From positions 124,001 through 188,000 of the forward strand of contig JAPMXV010000021.1 in the NCBI GenBank assembly GCA_026936335.1: a stretch of DNA of 64,000 bases. The letters are read 5' to 3'. The translations under genes and the position numbers were made by a program. The DNA is from Mantamonas sphyraenae STR306. Taxonomy: Eukaryota > Protista > CRuMs. Of the stretch, positions 40,447 through 48,985 are shown piece by piece (the first letter of the stretch is position 1; the number at the start of each line of letters is the position of its first letter). Below the pieces are notes generated by a model that saw only the letters and a list, made by a program, of their open reading frames with translations, had not been told where the DNA came from and did no database searches.

Positions 40447-42702
40447 ATGTCCAGCAAGGATTTGCCGCCGGTGAAGTTCACCAGTACGTGATTTTTGCCC
40501 GCCCGTGTGTGCAAGTGTGTGATGAGGAGCTTCCCCTGCGCGTGCTTTTTGCTCCCTTTCGCTGCGCTTCGCTCAGCAGACACTCAGTCCGGCCCCAAAA
40601 GCCCTCTCGAACCGGCCCGTTGACGGACTGTTCCCCGCCACTGACTCGCATGCGCCGTCGCACCATCCACAGCCATCAGCAAGGGAGACGGTGTGCAGGT
40701 GTGGCGTGGCCCACCCAGCGACATCGAAAAGGAGGAAGGCTACCAAAAGTGCGTTTTTGCAGCGGTTCTATCGGGCTGCGTTTGGCGTTTGGCGGAATGC
40801 AAAGACCCACCCAAGGACAAACCACGGCCGCTGACACCTCTGTGCCCATCCCCACACAGCACCGACGGGTCTGCAGTACATTTCAGCCGTGACGGCACTC
40901 GGCTAGCCATCACCACAAGCACAGGGGTCTCTGTGACCGACACGGCGTCGGGCGAGGTGGTGGCGGAGATCGAACGCACCAAGATTTTCGCAGTGCAGTT
41001 TTCGCCTCTGGCCACGTACTTGCTCACGTGGGAGCGCTGGAACAAGGACAAGCACACAGAATCCGGCGAGGGCAACCTGAGGGTGTATTACACAGCCACG
41101 GGGGAGCTGATCACGCAGTACAAGCACAAGTCGAACAACCGCGACGCCTGGCCCTTTGTGCAGTGGTCCGATGACGAGCTCATTGCCGCTCGCATGGTCC
41201 AAAACGAGGTGCTGTTCTTTGACGGCACCAACGTGGCCTCCGAGGCCATTGACACCCTGGAATTCGAGGGCATTGGTGCGTTTGCCCTGAGCCGAGGCGA
41301 TCCCCCGTACAAGCTGGCCGCCTTTGTGCCCGAACGCAAGGGCAGCCCGGCCGCCGTCTGTGTGTATCATTATCCCAACATCGGACGCAGCCAGGCGGTG
41401 GCTTCCAAGAGCTTTTTCAAGGCTGGCAGCGTGTCGATGGAGTGGAACAAGGCGGGCACCGCGCTGATCATCAAGACCAGCACCGACCACGACCAGACGG
41501 GAAAGAGTTACTACGGCGAGACAAGCCTGTACTACATGAGTGCCAATGGAGACGTGTCGTGCAAGGTGCCGCTGCCGAAGGAGGGACCGGTGCACGATGT
41601 CGGGTGGAATCCGAACGGCAAGGAGTTTGTGGTGGTGCATGGATTCACGCCGGCCAAGGCCATCCTGTTTGACTACAAGTGCCGTCCCAAGTTTGACTTT
41701 GGGTCGGCGTCGCGCAACACGGTCGTGTGGAGTCCGCATGGACGGTTCCTGGTCATTGCGGGCTTTGGCAACCTGGCCGGCGACATGGACTTTTGGGACC
41801 GGCAGAAGGAGGAGCTGATGGGCACGGCGAGGGCGTCGGATGCACACTCGTTCCACTGGTCGCCCGACAGCAGGCACTGCATCACCGCCACCACGTTCCC
41901 GCGGCTGCGAGTGGACAACGGCTTCCAGATCTGGAAGCACAACGGCGACCTGGTGCACGAGGAGTCGTTTGACGAGCTGTACAGCGTGCAATTCCGCCCC
42001 TGTGCGCCGGGCATCTATCCCAACCTGAAGCCCGAGGCGAAGCAGCAGCAGAGCAACGGCGGAGGCGGAGGCGCCTCCAGCGGCAGCTCCGCCTCGAGCA
42101 AGAGTGCCAATGCACAGCCCAGCGCACAGCCATACCGTCCGCCGGGCGCACGCGGCTCCAACTGGTCGTCGAGCTTCATGAAGCGCAAGGAGGACAATGA
42201 TGCGCCAAAGAAAATCACAGGCAGCGTGGCCAAGAGCAACAGCGCAGGAGGAGGCGGAGGCAACGGCAGCCGCACAAACACCATTCCCGGCGCTGCACCC
42301 GTGGGTGGGGAAAAGTTGTCGCGCACGGCATTGAAGAACAAACGCAAGCGGGAACGCAAGAAGGCCCTGCGGGAGGCTCAAAAGGCACGCGAGGACCTGC
42401 AAGAGACGATCAAGAGCAAGGGAGGCGCAGGGTCGTCCTCATCCTCCTCATCCTCCTCAACCGGATCAGGTTCGGGCAAGGAGGACGACGTGGACGAGGT
42501 GGAACTGCTGGACTCGGTCGACGCCTGTGCAAAGCGTCTGAAGAATCTGCACAAGAAAATGCGGCAGATTGCGGCCCTGAAGCAGCGCATGGATGAGGGA
42601 GAGGTGCTTGAGGACGACCAGCTGTCCAAGGTGCAACGTGAGACGGAAGTCACCTCGCTTATCGATCGCATCGAAGCCAAGAAGGCGCAACTGGAGGGTT
42701 GA
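40447..42702 (+). CDS. EIF2A: Eukaryotic translation initiation factor 2A (spliced 5' end)
   Basis: KSFFKA...WNKAGT...DQTGKSYYGET; EGPVHDVGWNP; IAGFGNLAGDMDFWD; TTFPRLRVDNG; PYRPPGARG. Two 5' introns (gtacgt, gtgcgt donors). Confidence 0.95.
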
Positions 42703-42726: not shown

Positions 42727-45700
42727 TTGGATGATGATGGAGGGGGGGGGGGGAATGTGATGGCAGCAAGCACAGAATGTGCAAGTGGCAAAAACAATGA
42801 AGCCACAAGTTGTTTTCGTTTGAGTGACTCTTTTGTCTTGACCGGCGTGCGTGCCCTCACCCAACACAGAATGGTTGCCACCACACGCAGTCGTCGGCAG
42901 ATCCATGGGAAGTACACAGCCGAACTGAGTCCCACGGAGTATGAGGCGGCCGTTCTGTACGAGAGGTACAGGCACAGCGATCGCGTGGGATCGCCCCAAG
43001 TGCATCCGGATGCCTGGGCCTTCTTGTGCCACTTCACCAGCCACCGTCACCGCAGCCGAGTGGCCATTGCCTCTGAAGTCCATGCCCGTGTGGTGCTCAA
43101 GATCCTGAGGTACAGGCTAAGGGAGCCACGAAAACTGGACGACAACGAACAGCTGCCGCTTGCACAGGCCCTCTTTGCACTCGTTGCTGGCGTAGGTGTC
43201 CTTGACGTGAAGACCAAGGCCTTGTACATGTTTAAACAGCACTCAACCGTGATTCCAACAAAACCAATAGTTATGGAGGCGTCCTACTCAGCTCCAGACG
43301 TGCAAGACAACAAGGAGGGGCCTGCGTTTGACCTGAAAAAGCTCGTGGAAAATGCAGCGAGTAGTGGCAGACTGTGTCACGACGCATGCAAATGGTGTCG
43401 ACAGAGCACAGGAAACACATCAGAGAACACACCAGAATTCGTCACAAACTACGTGCACACAGAGTATGCCCTGACCCAGGTCAGCATCGTGCTGTTGAGG
43501 CAACTGGAGAAGAAATTTGCCAACGACTTCAGTGTCCGCCCCGTGTTCCCCGTGCCTGGCAGCTTCAGCTCCGTAGCATTCAATGTTACGCGTCGCAAGG
43601 ATCTTATCTCGCGCCCTGTACTCCGCATGGACAACACCCTGTCCGAGAGGGAGCAGCGTGACGGACGTGGCGGGCACGCGCGGCATCCGCTCGTGTCTCT
43701 GGACACGTCGGCAACGGAGGTGCGTGCCTCTGTAATGTATGTGCTGCACATCGAGGACCTTGTCATGTCCTGCATGGCGCGTGTGCACACGACAGCAGAG
43801 TCAGCATCGTCGAGCTCATCGCTCCTCCAGCGTGCTGTGGAAGACGTGATGGCTGACGTACGTGACAAGGCGCGGCGTTGGAACCTGCGTGATGGGGATG
43901 TGACTGTGTTCCTGCGTGGTGAAACGCACACAACCATGTCCACGCTGGTCAACCAAACCAACCGCAGAGCGATCATCTTCGAGGCCACGCTCGCGCACAA
44001 GCACAACGAGACCATGGAGCAGCTGCTGGATACCCTGAGTGCAGCGAGCGAACGCATGGGTTTCAACGTGGAATGCTGCGCGAACCCCGTGTCAACCTGT
44101 TTGTCCAGGGCCTGCGCGCAAACAACGATCATCCAGAGTCCCCTCAGCGACGGATCTCTGATTCGAGAAGGCGTCTGGATCCAAGGCGAATCGGAACACA
44201 CTATCACACGTGACAACCACATCCACAGGCTTGTGGTGGGGTTGTTGTGTGGTTGCTCAACACTTCCCATCACCCTTTCCACCGTAGGCAAGACGGGCAA
44301 GATGTTGGACTGTGTAAGGACGTGGCACTTGCGGGGCGAGCTCGTGGACGCGGAAAAGGCGGTGCGTCTTGCGGCAAGGTCGGATTCACGGGCAGCGGAA
44401 AAGCGGCAGCTGAACGATGAGGTCAACCTGGCGATTGCAGCTCTGGTGGACGACGCGACACTGGAAGAGCTGAACGCCATGATGCGTACACCAGTAGTGG
44501 GCGCTTCTGTGGGAGCGAGCGACAACGACGATCACCACGACAATCGCGAGGAGTCTCAGACACTCTTCGATGCATGCGGTTTGATGCCCAAACGAGGGAG
44601 TGGTGTTGTGGCCGAGGCAATTTCGGTGGCGGGCGAAGGTTCAAGCGTTGGCGAGGCCATCAGCGCCATCGAGGAAGCTCTTCAGCAAGAGTGCAAGGAA
44701 AGAAAGCCACTGCCACCGGGGAGAACAAGCGTGTTTGTTCGGCGACGTGAGGTACACGGGCAGCGATTGCGGCTATTCGTGGCACGGGACTCCCTCGAGT
44801 CAGCGTCAATTCTGCGGGCCATGGGCACCCAGCACGTGCGAGATGCAATGACGGAAGCAGGCTTGGATGACTACGCCACGGCTGTGGACAAGATGGTGCA
44901 GGCAGAGAAGGGTTTGGTGCAGGCGGCGCGAACGGAGGCAAGCACAACCGCGTATGTAAGCAAGAAGAAATGGGACGCGTTTGTGGACGCCGTGCGCAAG
45001 GAGAACAGTGGAATGCCTATGTCCAAGGCGAACAAGGTGGTGCCTGCGGCCACACTCCAGAAACTAAGGCGGGAGGCGCCGTCATCACTGAAATCTCTCA
45101 GGATTCCCAAAGACACTACGTGCCTGCGAGTGACGAACGACGCCAGTGGCAAGAAGAGCAACACTCGCCATGATCCGAGGCCTAGTTTTGGTCCCGACTG
45201 GCCAGCAACGCACCAAGAACTCCTGTGCAAACTGCTGATGTGGTTTTGTGAATCCACCGTGACGCACACCGACACTATCAGCAAAATGACGACACATTAT
45301 AGCCGCTCTCTTGGAGCAATTCACGAGACCAAGCCTGTTCCAATCCCCCCCAAGATCACTGCGGTGATAGACAAGTGGAACCATGCGGGGTACGAGGCGC
45401 AACGCACCCGAACGATGCTGGATTTGGAGGCCCTGGTTCCAAACCACAACATGGATGTCCAGGCGTGCGTGGACTTCCCCGGCATGGTTGAGGCGATGCT
45501 TCTCACTCCGCTGCCCGAAGACGTGTGCGGCCGAGTGCAGATCACGGAGGCGCAGGCGGAAGGAAGCACACATTGGGAGCGCATGGCCTTCGCGGGTGGA
45601 GCGAAGCGGTTTCAAGAAGACGCAAAGAGGATGCTGCCACACATTGTGTATGCGTTGAGGGAGTTTGCACGGATCTACTTCACAGCGGCAGGCCTCGCGT

Positions 45701-48204
45701 CCACTCGCCGCGAGTGTGATAGGTTGTTTCTGGAGGTGACCAAATTCGAGATCAAGTCAGCACGGCAACACCTGCGCCAAGAACACGGTGTGCAGCTGGG
45801 AGAGGAGGACGAGGATGAGGACGAGGACGAGGACGAGGACGAGGAGGAAGATGAGGAGGACGAGGGGCGGGAAGAGGAGGACGAGGAGGACGAGGACGAG
45901 GACGAGGACACACGGGCGAATCCGAGCGAGCAGAAGGACGAGGAGGCAAAGGCACGTGACCCTGTGGAAGAATTCCTCGAGCTCACTGCCCCTGAACTGC
46001 GTGCGGTCTACCGCCGGCGCAGACCAAGCGATAGACCCGAGCGACCCCAGGTGGAGGATTTGGGTCTGGACGAACGCCAGCCATCACGCGCATCCCTCCA
46101 CAAGAGGCTGTTGCTGTTCAGCCTGGTGCTGGCAGACGGCGTATTTGGCAAGCGCGGCATTCACGCCGACAACACCGACGCCATGTCGCATGCGGTGGCA
46201 GTGTGGCTGGTGAGGGCAGTGGGTGGGTCGAAGCGCGCGTTCGTTCCCACCCCAAAACGCCTGTCCACCCCGCAGACGATCATGACCTCCCAAGGTGGTC
46301 TAGATATTGCTTTGCTGCCGCTGCTTCATGGAAACGACCGGAAACCTTCCACCGAGGCGCCGGAAAACGCTGCACTGTGGGACATGAAGCGCCAGCTCAT
46401 GGACGACGCGGGCAAACTACCACGGGAGGTACGGCTTGTCCACGCCGCGTCACAGGTGGTGGGTTACCAGCTAGGCTTGCGGTTGGAGGAGCACGTGAAG
46501 AATGCTGTGGTCGAGATCAAGGAGACTGCACTGGCGTCAGCCACGCAGGAGGGGGAAATGGCCGAGGTGGACGAGCTGGAAAGTGCGCTATCGGCGCTGA
46601 AAACGCGCCCTGCTGCAGAGCCAAATGACACACTGGTGTACCACGATGTTATCAGGGACGTCTTTCTGGCCCAAGAGGCAAGGAAGAAGAAGACAAAGAT
46701 GAAGTCGGGAATGCGCGGGCCAAATCCGTTTCTCGCGGTTCAGAGAGCAAACGACGTCATTTTCAAGGGAGGTGAAGCCCGGATCCACCGGTTCAAGCCT
46801 AAACCGTGGGGATATCAGCAGCTGTTCACCCTTCCAGAGACAACACGAGGAGGACGGCGAGTTGGATTTCCGTGCCAAGAATCTGACGAACCCGTGCCAG
46901 CTGTTGGCGTGTTCAATTCCATGGTTCAGTGGGCAGGGGGTGGATCGGGATCAACGTTGGCCTCGCCCAAGCCCCCGGCCACCATCAGTGCACACCGGCT
47001 GTCCAACTTGGGCTGGAATCTATGGCGAAATTTTGGGCACAACTGGATGCCCAAGTTGCAAGCATCGCTGACAACCCATGCTGGAGACAACATGGCTGCG
47101 ACCATCGACCGTGTTGTGGGCCTCATCAAGCACTATGCCCCTCCTTCGTCAGAGGAGCTCTCGGTGGCTTTGAAGGCCCTGGAATTGAATGTCGAAGATG
47201 AGCTGGTTCGCAAATGGGAGGACGTGGCGCGTGCAGCTGGCACAGCAACAGGCAAACGCCTCGCGCTGTCCACATCCTGGCTGCCGCGAACTGAAGAGGC
47301 AGGGGCGTCGTCTGAATCATCATCATCGTCGTCATCGTCGTCGTCTTCTTCGTCGTCCGACACGTCAATGACACGGTGGGCATCGAGTGTTCATGGTCTG
47401 TGTGCAGGCTACGACCCAGGTGTGTACCAGCACGTTGGAGCCCTGGTTTACTACTATGAGCGTGTTTGTGTTTCTCGTTTCGCAGACGTGTGCTGCATTG
47501 AGTACGGTCTGGCGTTTGACCTCAAGGGCACCAATGTCCGCTACGAGCAGAGGCGATCGGGCCATGCAGAGATCTCCAACAAGCTCAGCAAGCTGGGCAA
47601 GCAGCTTGCCAACGCTGTGGACGCGGCAAAGAATTCGAAGATCGAGGAGGAGATGAAAGCATTGACCGAAAAGTTGAGGCCAATCCAACAGCATATGGCC
47701 AAGCTGATCAAACACGGAAGCGCGGCAGTGATGGCTGACCTCCAACGACAGTGCAACCACCGAATTCACGTCGGATATGGAGCGGCGCCCGTGGTTGCAA
47801 GTGTGCCAGTGCGCACTGATGCCGCCCAACTCGCCTGCGTCGCTACGGTGACGATGACTCACGAAGCACAGACATCCAAACACTCTGCGTACGACTGTAA
47901 AGCCGTTCGAAAGCATGCTTGGAGTGTCGACAAGAACGGGTCACGGAACGATCGGTGGTATGTGCACGAAGTGGCCACCAAGACGCTGCCGGATGGAGAG
48001 GAGTGGGTGGCGCACAAGGATCGCAGTGCTGCCATCAACATGGCCAACAAATGCCATGCAGCTCGGTGTGGTGGTGTCGAGCTGTGGCTTTTCACATGGG
48101 TGTGGAGCGGCAAACGTGCGCATCTACAAGAGGCGGCCCGCCAGGCCATGCATGGTGGACAAGATGCAGGAAATGGGGGACAAAATGTCCAAGTGGAGTT
48201 GTAG
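42727..48204 (+). CDS. Very large Fanzor/TnpB-like RNA-guided nuclease (RuvC at C-terminus); probable start ATG 42871 (1777 aa)
   Basis: RuvC-I GYDPG (D codon 47413); helical region ...LIKHGSAAV; IHVGYG; relocated Glu THEAQTSK (E codon 47863); RuvC-III HKDRSAAINM (D codon 48019). Intronless. Confidence 0.78.
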   Translation: MDDDGGGGGNVMAASTECASGKNNEATSCFRLSDSFVLTGVRALTQHRMVATTRSRRQIHGKYTAELSPTEYEAAVLYERYRHSDRVGSPQVHPDAWAFLCHFTSHRHRSRVAIASEVHARVVLKILRYRLREPRKLDDNEQLPLAQALFALVAGVGVLDVKTKALYMFKQHSTVIPTKPIVMEASYSAPDVQDNKEGPAFDLKKLVENAASSGRLCHDACKWCRQSTGNTSENTPEFVTNYVHTEYALTQVSIVLLRQLEKKFANDFSVRPVFPVPGSFSSVAFNVTRRKDLISRPVLRMDNTLSEREQRDGRGGHARHPLVSLDTSATEVRASVMYVLHIEDLVMSCMARVHTTAESASSSSSLLQRAVEDVMADVRDKARRWNLRDGDVTVFLRGETHTTMSTLVNQTNRRAIIFEATLAHKHNETMEQLLDTLSAASERMGFNVECCANPVSTCLSRACAQTTIIQSPLSDGSLIREGVWIQGESEHTITRDNHIHRLVVGLLCGCSTLPITLSTVGKTGKMLDCVRTWHLRGELVDAEKAVRLAARSDSRAAEKRQLNDEVNLAIAALVDDATLEELNAMMRTPVVGASVGASDNDDHHDNREESQTLFDACGLMPKRGSGVVAEAISVAGEGSSVGEAISAIEEALQQECKERKPLPPGRTSVFVRRREVHGQRLRLFVARDSLESASILRAMGTQHVRDAMTEAGLDDYATAVDKMVQAEKGLVQAARTEASTTAYVSKKKWDAFVDAVRKENSGMPMSKANKVVPAATLQKLRREAPSSLKSLRIPKDTTCLRVTNDASGKKSNTRHDPRPSFGPDWPATHQELLCKLLMWFCESTVTHTDTISKMTTHYSRSLGAIHETKPVPIPPKITAVIDKWNHAGYEAQRTRTMLDLEALVPNHNMDVQACVDFPGMVEAMLLTPLPEDVCGRVQITEAQAEGSTHWERMAFAGGAKRFQEDAKRMLPHIVYALREFARIYFTAAGLASTRRECDRLFLEVTKFEIKSARQHLRQEHGVQLGEEDEDEDEDEDEDEEEDEEDEGREEEDEEDEDEDEDTRANPSEQKDEEAKARDPVEEFLELTAPELRAVYRRRRPSDRPERPQVEDLGLDERQPSRASLHKRLLLFSLVLADGVFGKRGIHADNTDAMSHAVAVWLVRAVGGSKRAFVPTPKRLSTPQTIMTSQGGLDIALLPLLHGNDRKPSTEAPENAALWDMKRQLMDDAGKLPREVRLVHAASQVVGYQLGLRLEEHVKNAVVEIKETALASATQEGEMAEVDELESALSALKTRPAAEPNDTLVYHDVIRDVFLAQEARKKKTKMKSGMRGPNPFLAVQRANDVIFKGGEARIHRFKPKPWGYQQLFTLPETTRGGRRVGFPCQESDEPVPAVGVFNSMVQWAGGGSGSTLASPKPPATISAHRLSNLGWNLWRNFGHNWMPKLQASLTTHAGDNMAATIDRVVGLIKHYAPPSSEELSVALKALELNVEDELVRKWEDVARAAGTATGKRLALSTSWLPRTEEAGASSESSSSSSSSSSSSSSDTSMTRWASSVHGLCAGYDPGVYQHVGALVYYYERVCVSRFADVCCIEYGLAFDLKGTNVRYEQRRSGHAEISNKLSKLGKQLANAVDAAKNSKIEEEMKALTEKLRPIQQHMAKLIKHGSAAVMADLQRQCNHRIHVGYGAAPVVASVPVRTDAAQLACVATVTMTHEAQTSKHSAYDCKAVRKHAWSVDKNGSRNDRWYVHEVATKTLPDGEEWVAHKDRSAAINMANKCHAARCGGVELWLFTWVWSGKRAHLQEAARQAMHGGQDAGNGGQNVQVEL
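42790..42809 (+). repeat. Left copy of 20-bp direct repeat (contains AATGAA)
   Basis: Exact match to 48268-48287; both copies are preceded by GC, with an A5 versus A6 difference. Confidence 0.9.
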
Positions 48205-48290
48205 ATGATTGTTGTGGTGAAATGCTTGTTTAAACTAGCGCTTGTAAGCAGCGCGAGGTGATTTGCAAAAAACAATGAAGCCACAAGACC
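48205..48290 (+). ncRNA. Candidate omegaRNA (scaffold + guide) downstream of the Fanzor-like ORF
   Basis: Position immediately 3' of the ORF, as known for TnpB/Fanzor; stem CTaGCGCT-TGTAAGC-AGCGCgAG (~48235-48257); GTTTAAAC palindrome. No expression evidence. Confidence 0.35.
48268..48287 (+). repeat. Right copy of 20-bp direct repeat (contains AATGAA)
   Basis: Exact match to 42790-42809. Confidence 0.9.
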
Positions 48291-48362
48291 TCTGGGAGGT
48301 TGAGATGAAACGGGGGTTGATTTTGACACGCTTTTTGAGCTCCAGGCATGCGCGTGCGTAGC

Positions 48363-48985
48363 CTATTCCTGTGACGATTGTGTCTGTTTGGTGCGTTTGT
48401 ACACAAGGTTGCGCTCGTGGACGACGGTCTTGATGCGGGCCATGCTCTTGCGCACCTTTTGCATTCGCTGCGGATTGTCCATGCGCAGGCCCTTCTTCTT
48501 CATGTCGCGCTTCTCGGTGAGGAGCAGATTGCGCTCCCTCAGCAGCACCAGCCACAATGACTGCAGGTCCTGGAAGCTCTTGAGGCGCAGTTCGCTGGCA
48601 CGCCAGGCTCGGCCTGAGGCGGTGGGGAGCAGACAAGCGGGGACGAGATGCGGGTGGCGGGACGTCCGGGGCGTCAGCGTTCACACACACACACACACGA
48701 CAACCACACATGTGACGGCAAAGCCATGGTAAAGAAAGGGAGAGAGTGTATGGGGCAGAGCGACTCACCTGCGTGCACAGATTCGTTCTCCTTGCGTTCG
48801 AGGTAGGACGGGGCGAGGAGCTGGGACTCGAAAGAGTCGCGTGGAGCGGCCGAAGTGTCGTCGGCGTCCAGGACGGCGACACTGGAGGTGGAGAAGGAGG
48901 CCGACGCATGCGGATATGTACAGGCGACCATGCTGCGGTGCACAATGTGTGCCTTGACACGCACGGAACGGAGGCCAGAAAACAT
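48363..48985 (-). CDS. MRPL47: Mitochondrial ribosomal protein uL29m, 2 exons
   Basis: Splicing 48614-48768 gives [36 protein letters not shown]...KVRKSMARIKTVVHER; N-terminal targeting-like sequence. Confidence 0.9.

Follow-up and report, generated by a model that had tools for sequence, protein, structure and literature searches.

What kind of event places a 5.47-kb insert with a giant Fanzor-like gene between two convergent host genes, and leaves an exact 20-bp direct repeat with one copy at each end? This question is raised by a locus in a window of 64,000 nt (the whole stretch of DNA analysed here) from the deep-branching protist Mantamonas sphyraenae. An earlier note on the same DNA offered two readings of the repeat, an unusually long target-site duplication or the guide of an omegaRNA directed against the element's own left flank, and both are weighed below against the sister copies of the element in the genome.

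A UNIQUE 20-BP REPEAT BETWEEN TWO HOST GENES

40693 to 42702, + strand: host eIF2A gene, the left neighbour, start not mapped (Pfam PF08662, E 9e-79; list of open reading frames, ORFs)
42796 to 42801, + strand: AATGAA, predicted and probable host 3′-end signal of eIF2A
48363 to 48613, − strand: last exon of host MRPL47, the right neighbour (PF06984, E 9e-25, exon 2 searched alone)

The 20-mer occupies 42790–42809 and 48268–48287, each time on the + strand; its left copy starts 88 nt past the eIF2A stop (42702) and its right copy 64 nt past the stop of the long ORF (48204). Shuffles, a search of the assembly (25.06 Mb, 78 contigs) and the ORF list confirm this exact repeat, first reported in the earlier note: two matches occur in the window against 0.01 expected in shuffled sequence, and they are the only exact copies in the assembly. 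Since the next best matches genome-wide carry three mismatches, the 20-mer is not a common 3′-end word, an objection that the note itself had raised and that is thus ruled out. When one copy and the interior are deleted in silico, 182 nt are left between the eIF2A and MRPL47 stops, which bears out the short convergent spacer that had been proposed. No empty eIF2A/MRPL47 site was found in the assembly, so that this pre-insertion sequence is a reconstruction.

Contigs of public runs, used here instead of raw reads and probably from the same study as the assembly, span both junctions, and the repeat is therefore unlikely to be an assembly artefact. The left junction is crossed by X3 record 17 without substitutions, and the right one by X1 record 8 and X2 record 16 without substitutions and by X3 record 24 with one gap; a window-specific A at 48271 is present in the Illumina contigs that span the right junction. 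Among the public-run contigs listed, none has a joint that skips the element. Contig depth over the copy-specific stretch 43274–43534 is near that of the flanks (63 vs 58 in X1, 95 vs 85 in X2), as expected if the element is present on both homologues, contig depth not being a copy number.

The AATGAA within the left 20-mer is enriched past host stops, four of its nine occurrences in the host DNA of the window lying within 100 nt after the stop of a long ORF, and for this reason it may serve as the eIF2A signal. It had been suggested that the duplication provides the element with a ready 3′-end signal; the likeness to a host signal stands, but the hexamer is incidental to the element, because it is absent from the junction of every other copy and is found within 200 nt of the right end in only one of them. 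In subfamilies B and C (left ends L016–L022 and L034) AATAAA or AATGAA occurs about 35–45 nt inside the left end, where it could serve the upstream host gene; subfamily A, to which the window copy belongs, is without it.

THE INSERT AND ITS FAMILY

42808 to 42840, + strand: left end of the element, lacking about 1 nt of the complete terminus, with a motif shared with IS630/Tc1 transposase elements
48205 to 48276, + strand: conserved non-coding right end, candidate omegaRNA scaffold and degenerate right terminal inverted repeat (TIR)

The insert extends from about 42808 to 48276, and its nearest sister is 97% identical in DNA across this interval. The family has at least nine copies in three subfamilies; nine copies are long, and L024 is a remnant of 62 nt. 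All of them share the right end, and their likeness stops at ...ATACA(A/G), usually followed by T, which corresponds to 48275/48276. The left end starts about six bases ahead of a TTTTC motif and aligns with L042 and L050 (compared at the left end), which encode DDE_3 (E 1e-25) and HTH_Tnp_IS630 domains; the genome has about 17 full-length Tc1/IS630 transposase genes. As this left end is common to Tc1/IS630 transposase elements, the insert is read as a non-autonomous Tc1-type element, presumably mobilised in trans. Its TIRs match at 10 of 14 positions in L022, at 7 of 14 in the window copy and at 6–8 of 14 in the others. The transposon family is young.

In three of the nine long copies (L018, L021 and L022) the ORF is split, by real breaks or by assembly errors. 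The window copy and L015 show zero differences over 47400–48270 (870 nt) and differ by about 2.8% in the remainder, in patches, while the 85% DNA likeness of subfamilies A and B is limited to the last 970 nt; this patchy identity of the 3′ part suggests a recent exchange or conversion of the RuvC and omegaRNA module. L024 (1464–1527; G000:C10 near 8483) is a lone right end of omegaRNA size with the scaffold hairpin and the terminus, inserted in an apparent leucine-rich-repeat gene with a 6–8 nt duplication. The left-end motif is also carried, with unrelated interiors, by L034, L036, L038, L041, L044, L046, L048 and L049, of which L034, L038 and L041 resemble short left-end remnants of about 50–155 nt. 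TA is likewise missing where transposase-bearing elements (L042, L050 and G000:C2 near 226348) begin, CC and TT standing at the left junction, and one copy is clipped by about 70 nt.

A GIANT FANZOR-LIKE PROTEIN

42871 to 48204, + strand: giant Fanzor-like protein of 1777 aa, encoded by an intronless ORF that starts at a conserved ATG, in a frame open from 42706
47407 to 48045, + strand: RuvC-like motifs D1515 (DPG), HVGYG, E1665 (ExxTS) and D1717 (DRSAAIN), invariant in the three subfamilies

The ORF is found in eight further copies, and its N-terminal part is 34–95% identical across the nine. Profile searches gave no family match for the N-terminal 1500 aa, and the ESM Atlas none for the N-terminal 960 aa. 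Read by motif, the C-terminal 280 aa hold a rearranged RuvC triad, with a glycine at the canonical RuvC-II place and an alternative E downstream; Fanzors are defined by such a rearranged RuvC-II, with G or P at the canonical place and the alternative E later (PMC10530073). ESM Atlas features reach 0.91–0.93 to the Cas12f1-like_TNB, OrfB_IS605 and C2c1 RuvC clusters, and nine of the ten named matches belong to one clan. The RuvC part has no match in Pfam, NCBIfam or PDB and none in 1.84 billion representatives or in the 5.8 billion set; DARPin matches in the search with this part are repeat artefacts. AlphaFold models of the protein have pLDDT values of 34–36. The zinc finger, which in Fanzors begins about six residues past the catalytic E (PMC13565253), is not canonical here: Ser stands at the first Cys place, and the nearest Cys lies 11 residues past E1665. 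Such a degenerate finger would lower the likelihood of Fanzor membership. By its motifs and language-model similarity, the protein is very probably a highly divergent Fanzor with putative nuclease activity, and it may be Fanzor1-like, to judge only by its YG and ExxTS motifs and by the kind of carrier. Homology searches returned no alignable homologue outside this genome, and a literature search found no publication naming Fanzor together with Mantamonas. In the segment 43730–44335 the motif order resembles, by eye, that of FEN1/XPG, with most acidic residues absent; against PIN 5′-nuclease families, the segment gave no Pfam or PDB match to E 10 in the three subfamilies.

THE RIGHT END AS CANDIDATE OMEGARNA

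48238 to 48254, + strand: 5-bp hairpin kept in all nine copies, with a single event in which both sides changed (C-G to U-A)
48277 to 48291, + strand: predicted guide, 14–15 nt beyond the conserved end, by analogy to PMC13565253

In ten loci conservation falls abruptly past 48275/48276, where the conserved non-coding right end gives way to variable flank. This right end is a candidate omegaRNA scaffold; whole-region folding of the 72 nt after the stop was no better than that of shuffles. Because the conserved scaffold reaches 48275/48276, the guide would begin near 48277. In the DNA examined, the predicted guide has its full match at the reconstructed empty site only, with no other within two mismatches over 15 nt. 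The full target would be the empty allele, which is the standard TnpB/Fanzor arrangement.

The second reading of the earlier note, in which the right 20-mer itself serves as guide and directs the system against its own left flank, the 3′ end of eIF2A, with AAGTGGC as candidate TAM and with binding, regulation or re-cutting as the conceivable outcome, is very unlikely. It is true that 11–12 of the 20 nt stand in guide position, so that the left junction could conceivably be bound weakly or form a partial R-loop. The first 8–9 nt, however, are part of the scaffold conserved in all copies, and a predicted guide starting at 48276–48278 matches the left junction over only 10–12 of its 14–15 nt and then fails, whereas cuts are expected at 14–21. 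Moreover, the sequence ahead of this match is ...AACAAT and not the TAM that had been proposed, other copies have no such self-match, and the left junction is intact in contigs. Self-cutting at the left junction is thus unlikely.

One of the public runs, X4, looks like RNA, its run type being guessed (depth 659 on eIF2A and 217 on MRPL47, with intergenic gaps). The X4 element contigs listed (window 42876–48276) are alleles of a sister copy on C58 and extend past the right end; none of these contigs has the alleles of the window copy. The transcribed copy may be this sister.

JUNCTIONS OF THE SISTER COPIES

L015: whole left end, duplication TA
L022: whole left end, duplication TA
L019: whole left end, duplication TTA
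L020: whole left end, duplication CTA
L021: whole left end, no duplication
L018: clipped left end, 5 nt duplication
L016: clipped left end, 6 nt duplication and 7 nt filler
L024: clipped left end, 6–8 nt duplication
L017: clipped left end, 11 nt duplication
Window copy: clipped left end, 20 nt repeat

The ten loci fall into two junction classes, a TA-type one and a longer, repair-like one, and since the sister copies show 0–11 nt there is no fixed long duplication. The TA target duplication is exact in two of the ten (L015, L022) and longer by one base in two more (L019, L020); in all four the right flank also repeats the first 1–3 bases of the left end. At the window copy a TA duplication is absent, the right junction being TG and the repeat 20 nt. 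In 5/10 loci TA coincides with the right junction or lies 1 nt away from it, compared with about 1 per 100 positions in host DNA, and no TAM consensus beyond a pyrimidine emerges across the insertion sites. True left/right pairs share a mean of 7.2 against 3.0 for mismatched pairs, a difference reached in 0 of 20000 permutations, also without the window copy; these statistics cover 10 pairs only, and taken one by one the duplications of 4–6 nt do not exceed the null range (maximum 6) and are in part due to the shared TA.

The exactness and uniqueness of the 20-mer could be taken as the mark of a new integration chemistry with a fixed duplication of about 20 bp. This is hardly credible: none of the nine other junction pairs exceeds 11 nt, and four are of the TA type with 2–3 nt.

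Three of the TA-type insertions (L015, L019 and L020) coincide exactly with the stop codon of a host gene (TAG or TAA), which is kept or recreated at the junction; this compact genome is GC-rich, and the TA dinucleotide is rare in it. In L020, too, the flank may have replaced the terminal bases of the element. 3′ transduction or cross-targeting between copies was considered and rejected, the best flank-to-flank match being 7/12.

ANATOMY OF THE 20-BP REPEAT

42790 to 42798, + strand: host 3′UTR AAAAACAAT, matching the element right end AAATACAAT at 8/9 bases, the microhomology part of the repeat
42799 to 42809, + strand: 11 nt of ordinary target duplication in its left copy (the alignment with the nearest sister starts at 42808)
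48268 to 48287, + strand: right copy of the 20-mer, whose A at 48271 agrees with the host flank and stands against a T in all other copies

The 20-mer is composite. Because all copies diverge at 48275/48276, the first 8–9 nt of its right copy fall at the conserved right end of the element, and the last 11–12 nt are an ordinary host duplication. Base by base, the repeat divides into the 9 nt that match the right end at eight bases, 9 nt that are simply host sequence, and AG (42808–42809), which forms the final 2 nt of the duplication and is common to the element left end. Matches of 8/9 to the right end are found only four times in 117 kb of host DNA, both strands included. Across the last 870 nt, the A/T at 48271 is the sole difference from the nearest sister, and as this A agrees with the host flank, 17–20 nt of the right copy are probably derived from the target. 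The simplest reading is that the right junction was formed inside the microhomology and that AG served to attach the left end 11 nt farther on. A chance 8/9 match combined with one slippage mutation is a possible alternative, which needs two coincidences; the T-to-A change sits in an A run, where slippage could explain it. Simple homing of a canonical TA insertion would not be expected to leave TG at the right junction. By reasoning, a simple circle-junction crossover cannot yield the nine extra host bases at the left junction.

The same bases bear on a transposase-only account, in which Tc1-type transposition was sloppy at a T-containing site, the 11 nt came from later local repair, and the 8/9 match and the T-to-A change are coincidental. 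Degenerate TIRs (6–10/14) would make a clean, two-ended transfer inefficient, half of the copies are near canonical, and a single substitution in the A run would be enough. Nevertheless this account is unlikely, as it calls for a chance match with odds of about 3 in 100,000 at each site and also for a matching mutation at the one informative base among 870 identical ones, and the target is not TA.

A PROBABLE SCAR OF MICROHOMOLOGY-MEDIATED REPAIR

The 20-bp repeat is probably the scar that microhomology-mediated repair left at the insertion of a non-autonomous Tc1/IS630-type Fanzor element, and not the product of a clean TA transfer. The junction anatomy is read directly from the bases, and from it we infer the following order of events. 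In the host 3′UTR, a 9-mer would already have resembled the right end almost completely, and within that homology the right junction would have formed; the left end, 1 nt short, would then have been joined by the 2-nt AG overlap 11 nt on, with duplication of the intervening stretch. The break was most likely staggered or one-sided. The first reading of the earlier note survives as far as a non-classic, repair-like route is concerned, whereas the long target-site duplication itself does not, because 8–9 nt of it are the right end of the element; the distinct duplications that it anticipated in other copies are present as stretches of 0–11 nt, none of them of 20 bp.

Retro-insertion in trans could in principle yield a 17–20 bp duplication, if a LINE-type enzyme nicked the bottom-strand T-run at 42790–42794 and primed on the A-rich end of an RNA. 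The T5 run at the junction does face an A-rich element end, 3′ ends are precise and 5′ ends ragged, and the 62-nt copy L024 with its 6–8 nt duplication consists of the right end only. In none of the ten right junctions, however, is there a poly(A) or simple-repeat tail, and no copy carries the flank of another, though the RNA should include the guide. In nine of the ten copies the left end is no more than 10 nt away from the DNA end, upstream of the start of the RNA-like contigs (about 42876), and the TA enrichment and the left end shared with Tc1 are further points against this route, which is distinctly unlikely.

Within the repair explanation, cutting of the empty allele by the element's own Fanzor is tentatively favoured as the source of the break. 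Fanzor cuts 9–21 nt from the TAM and produces 5′ or 3′ overhangs (PMC10432273); it is favoured because cuts at these distances span the sizes of the long junction class and the predicted guide fully matches the empty allele. After such a cut, one end would copy the element in, and the TAM-side end, held by the enzyme, would be joined late. The TG at the right junction and the lack of a visible TAM consensus speak against this source. Two other sources would fit equally, a replication template switch and an unrelated break at which an excised or nicked element was captured. It is doubtful that the Fanzor itself makes the long variable duplications as a rule, by cutting the empty allele 10–20 nt into the guide while microhomology joins the other end. 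If it did, the scar would be a genomic footprint of RNA-guided homing in eukaryotes and of a spreading partly independent of transposase, and duplication length would report the cut position.

RELATION TO KNOWN FANZOR ELEMENTS

Variable duplications are already known from other Fanzor elements. The Fanzor1 elements CRe-1, -2 and -3 of Chlamydomonas reinhardtii are of the Helitron2 type and have variable duplications of 7–19 bp, but where the 5′ end of a CRe copy is complete, the signature is the canonical one of the host transposon (Bao and Jurka, 2013; PMC3627910). Like them, the present element is a non-autonomous Fanzor element with an intact 3′ end, a clipped 5′ end and variable duplications. 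It differs in that its carrier is Tc1/IS630-like (DDE, TA target) and not an HUH Helitron, in that clipping is mostly by 1–10 nt and there is no fixed upstream tetranucleotide, and in that the window copy has right-end microhomology and the protein is intronless and about three times larger. The Fanzor1 element MCi-2 of Mucor circinelloides, with duplications of 11–12 bp, fuzzy 5′ ends and no clear TIRs (PMC3627910), also shares with it a common 3′ region with differing 5′ regions and the fuzziness of the 5′ ends, but its fixed duplication pattern (ATAATT...) and its partial Crypton recombinase are not seen here.

The Mariner/Tc1-borne Fanzor1 elements SPu-1 (SpuFz1), PUl-1, PUl-4 and PGv-1 have clean TIRs of 30–33 bp and uniform TA duplications (PMC3627910, PMC10432273). 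In these, as here, the Fanzor ORF is followed by a short conserved right end doubling as omegaRNA (here a candidate), the target is TA, and non-autonomous copies share ends with transposase elements (here the left end); the D-E-D spacing, 150 and 52 aa here, is similar to the 158 and 65 aa of SpuFz1. In contrast, the TIRs of the present family are degenerate, the duplications range from 0 to 20 nt and the zinc finger is not canonical; the protein has 1777 aa against 633 aa in SpuFz1. In restorative homing by TnpB/OMEGA systems, the guide comes from the right flank, which makes the empty site the full target (PMC13565253). The predicted guide is likewise drawn from the right flank, but precise homing restores the junctions, whereas those described here look imprecisely repaired.

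What is new is the same scar on a DDE-type carrier beside near-canonical copies, together with right-end microhomology and a protein whose length is about three times that of SpuFz1. Because this scar is found on both Helitron and DDE-type carriers, the variable long duplications may point to a Fanzor-linked route. Homing by Fanzor has so far been assumed from bacterial TnpB, and the CRe duplications have been put down to Fanzor cutting only tentatively (Craig, 2023; PMC10288648). The 20-mer is a special case and not a new system. The genome holds young Fanzor- and transposase-carrying Tc1-type elements together, with both clean TA and long repair-type junctions, and as both kinds of element and of junction coexist in it, it allows a test of whether junction type is linked to Fanzor.
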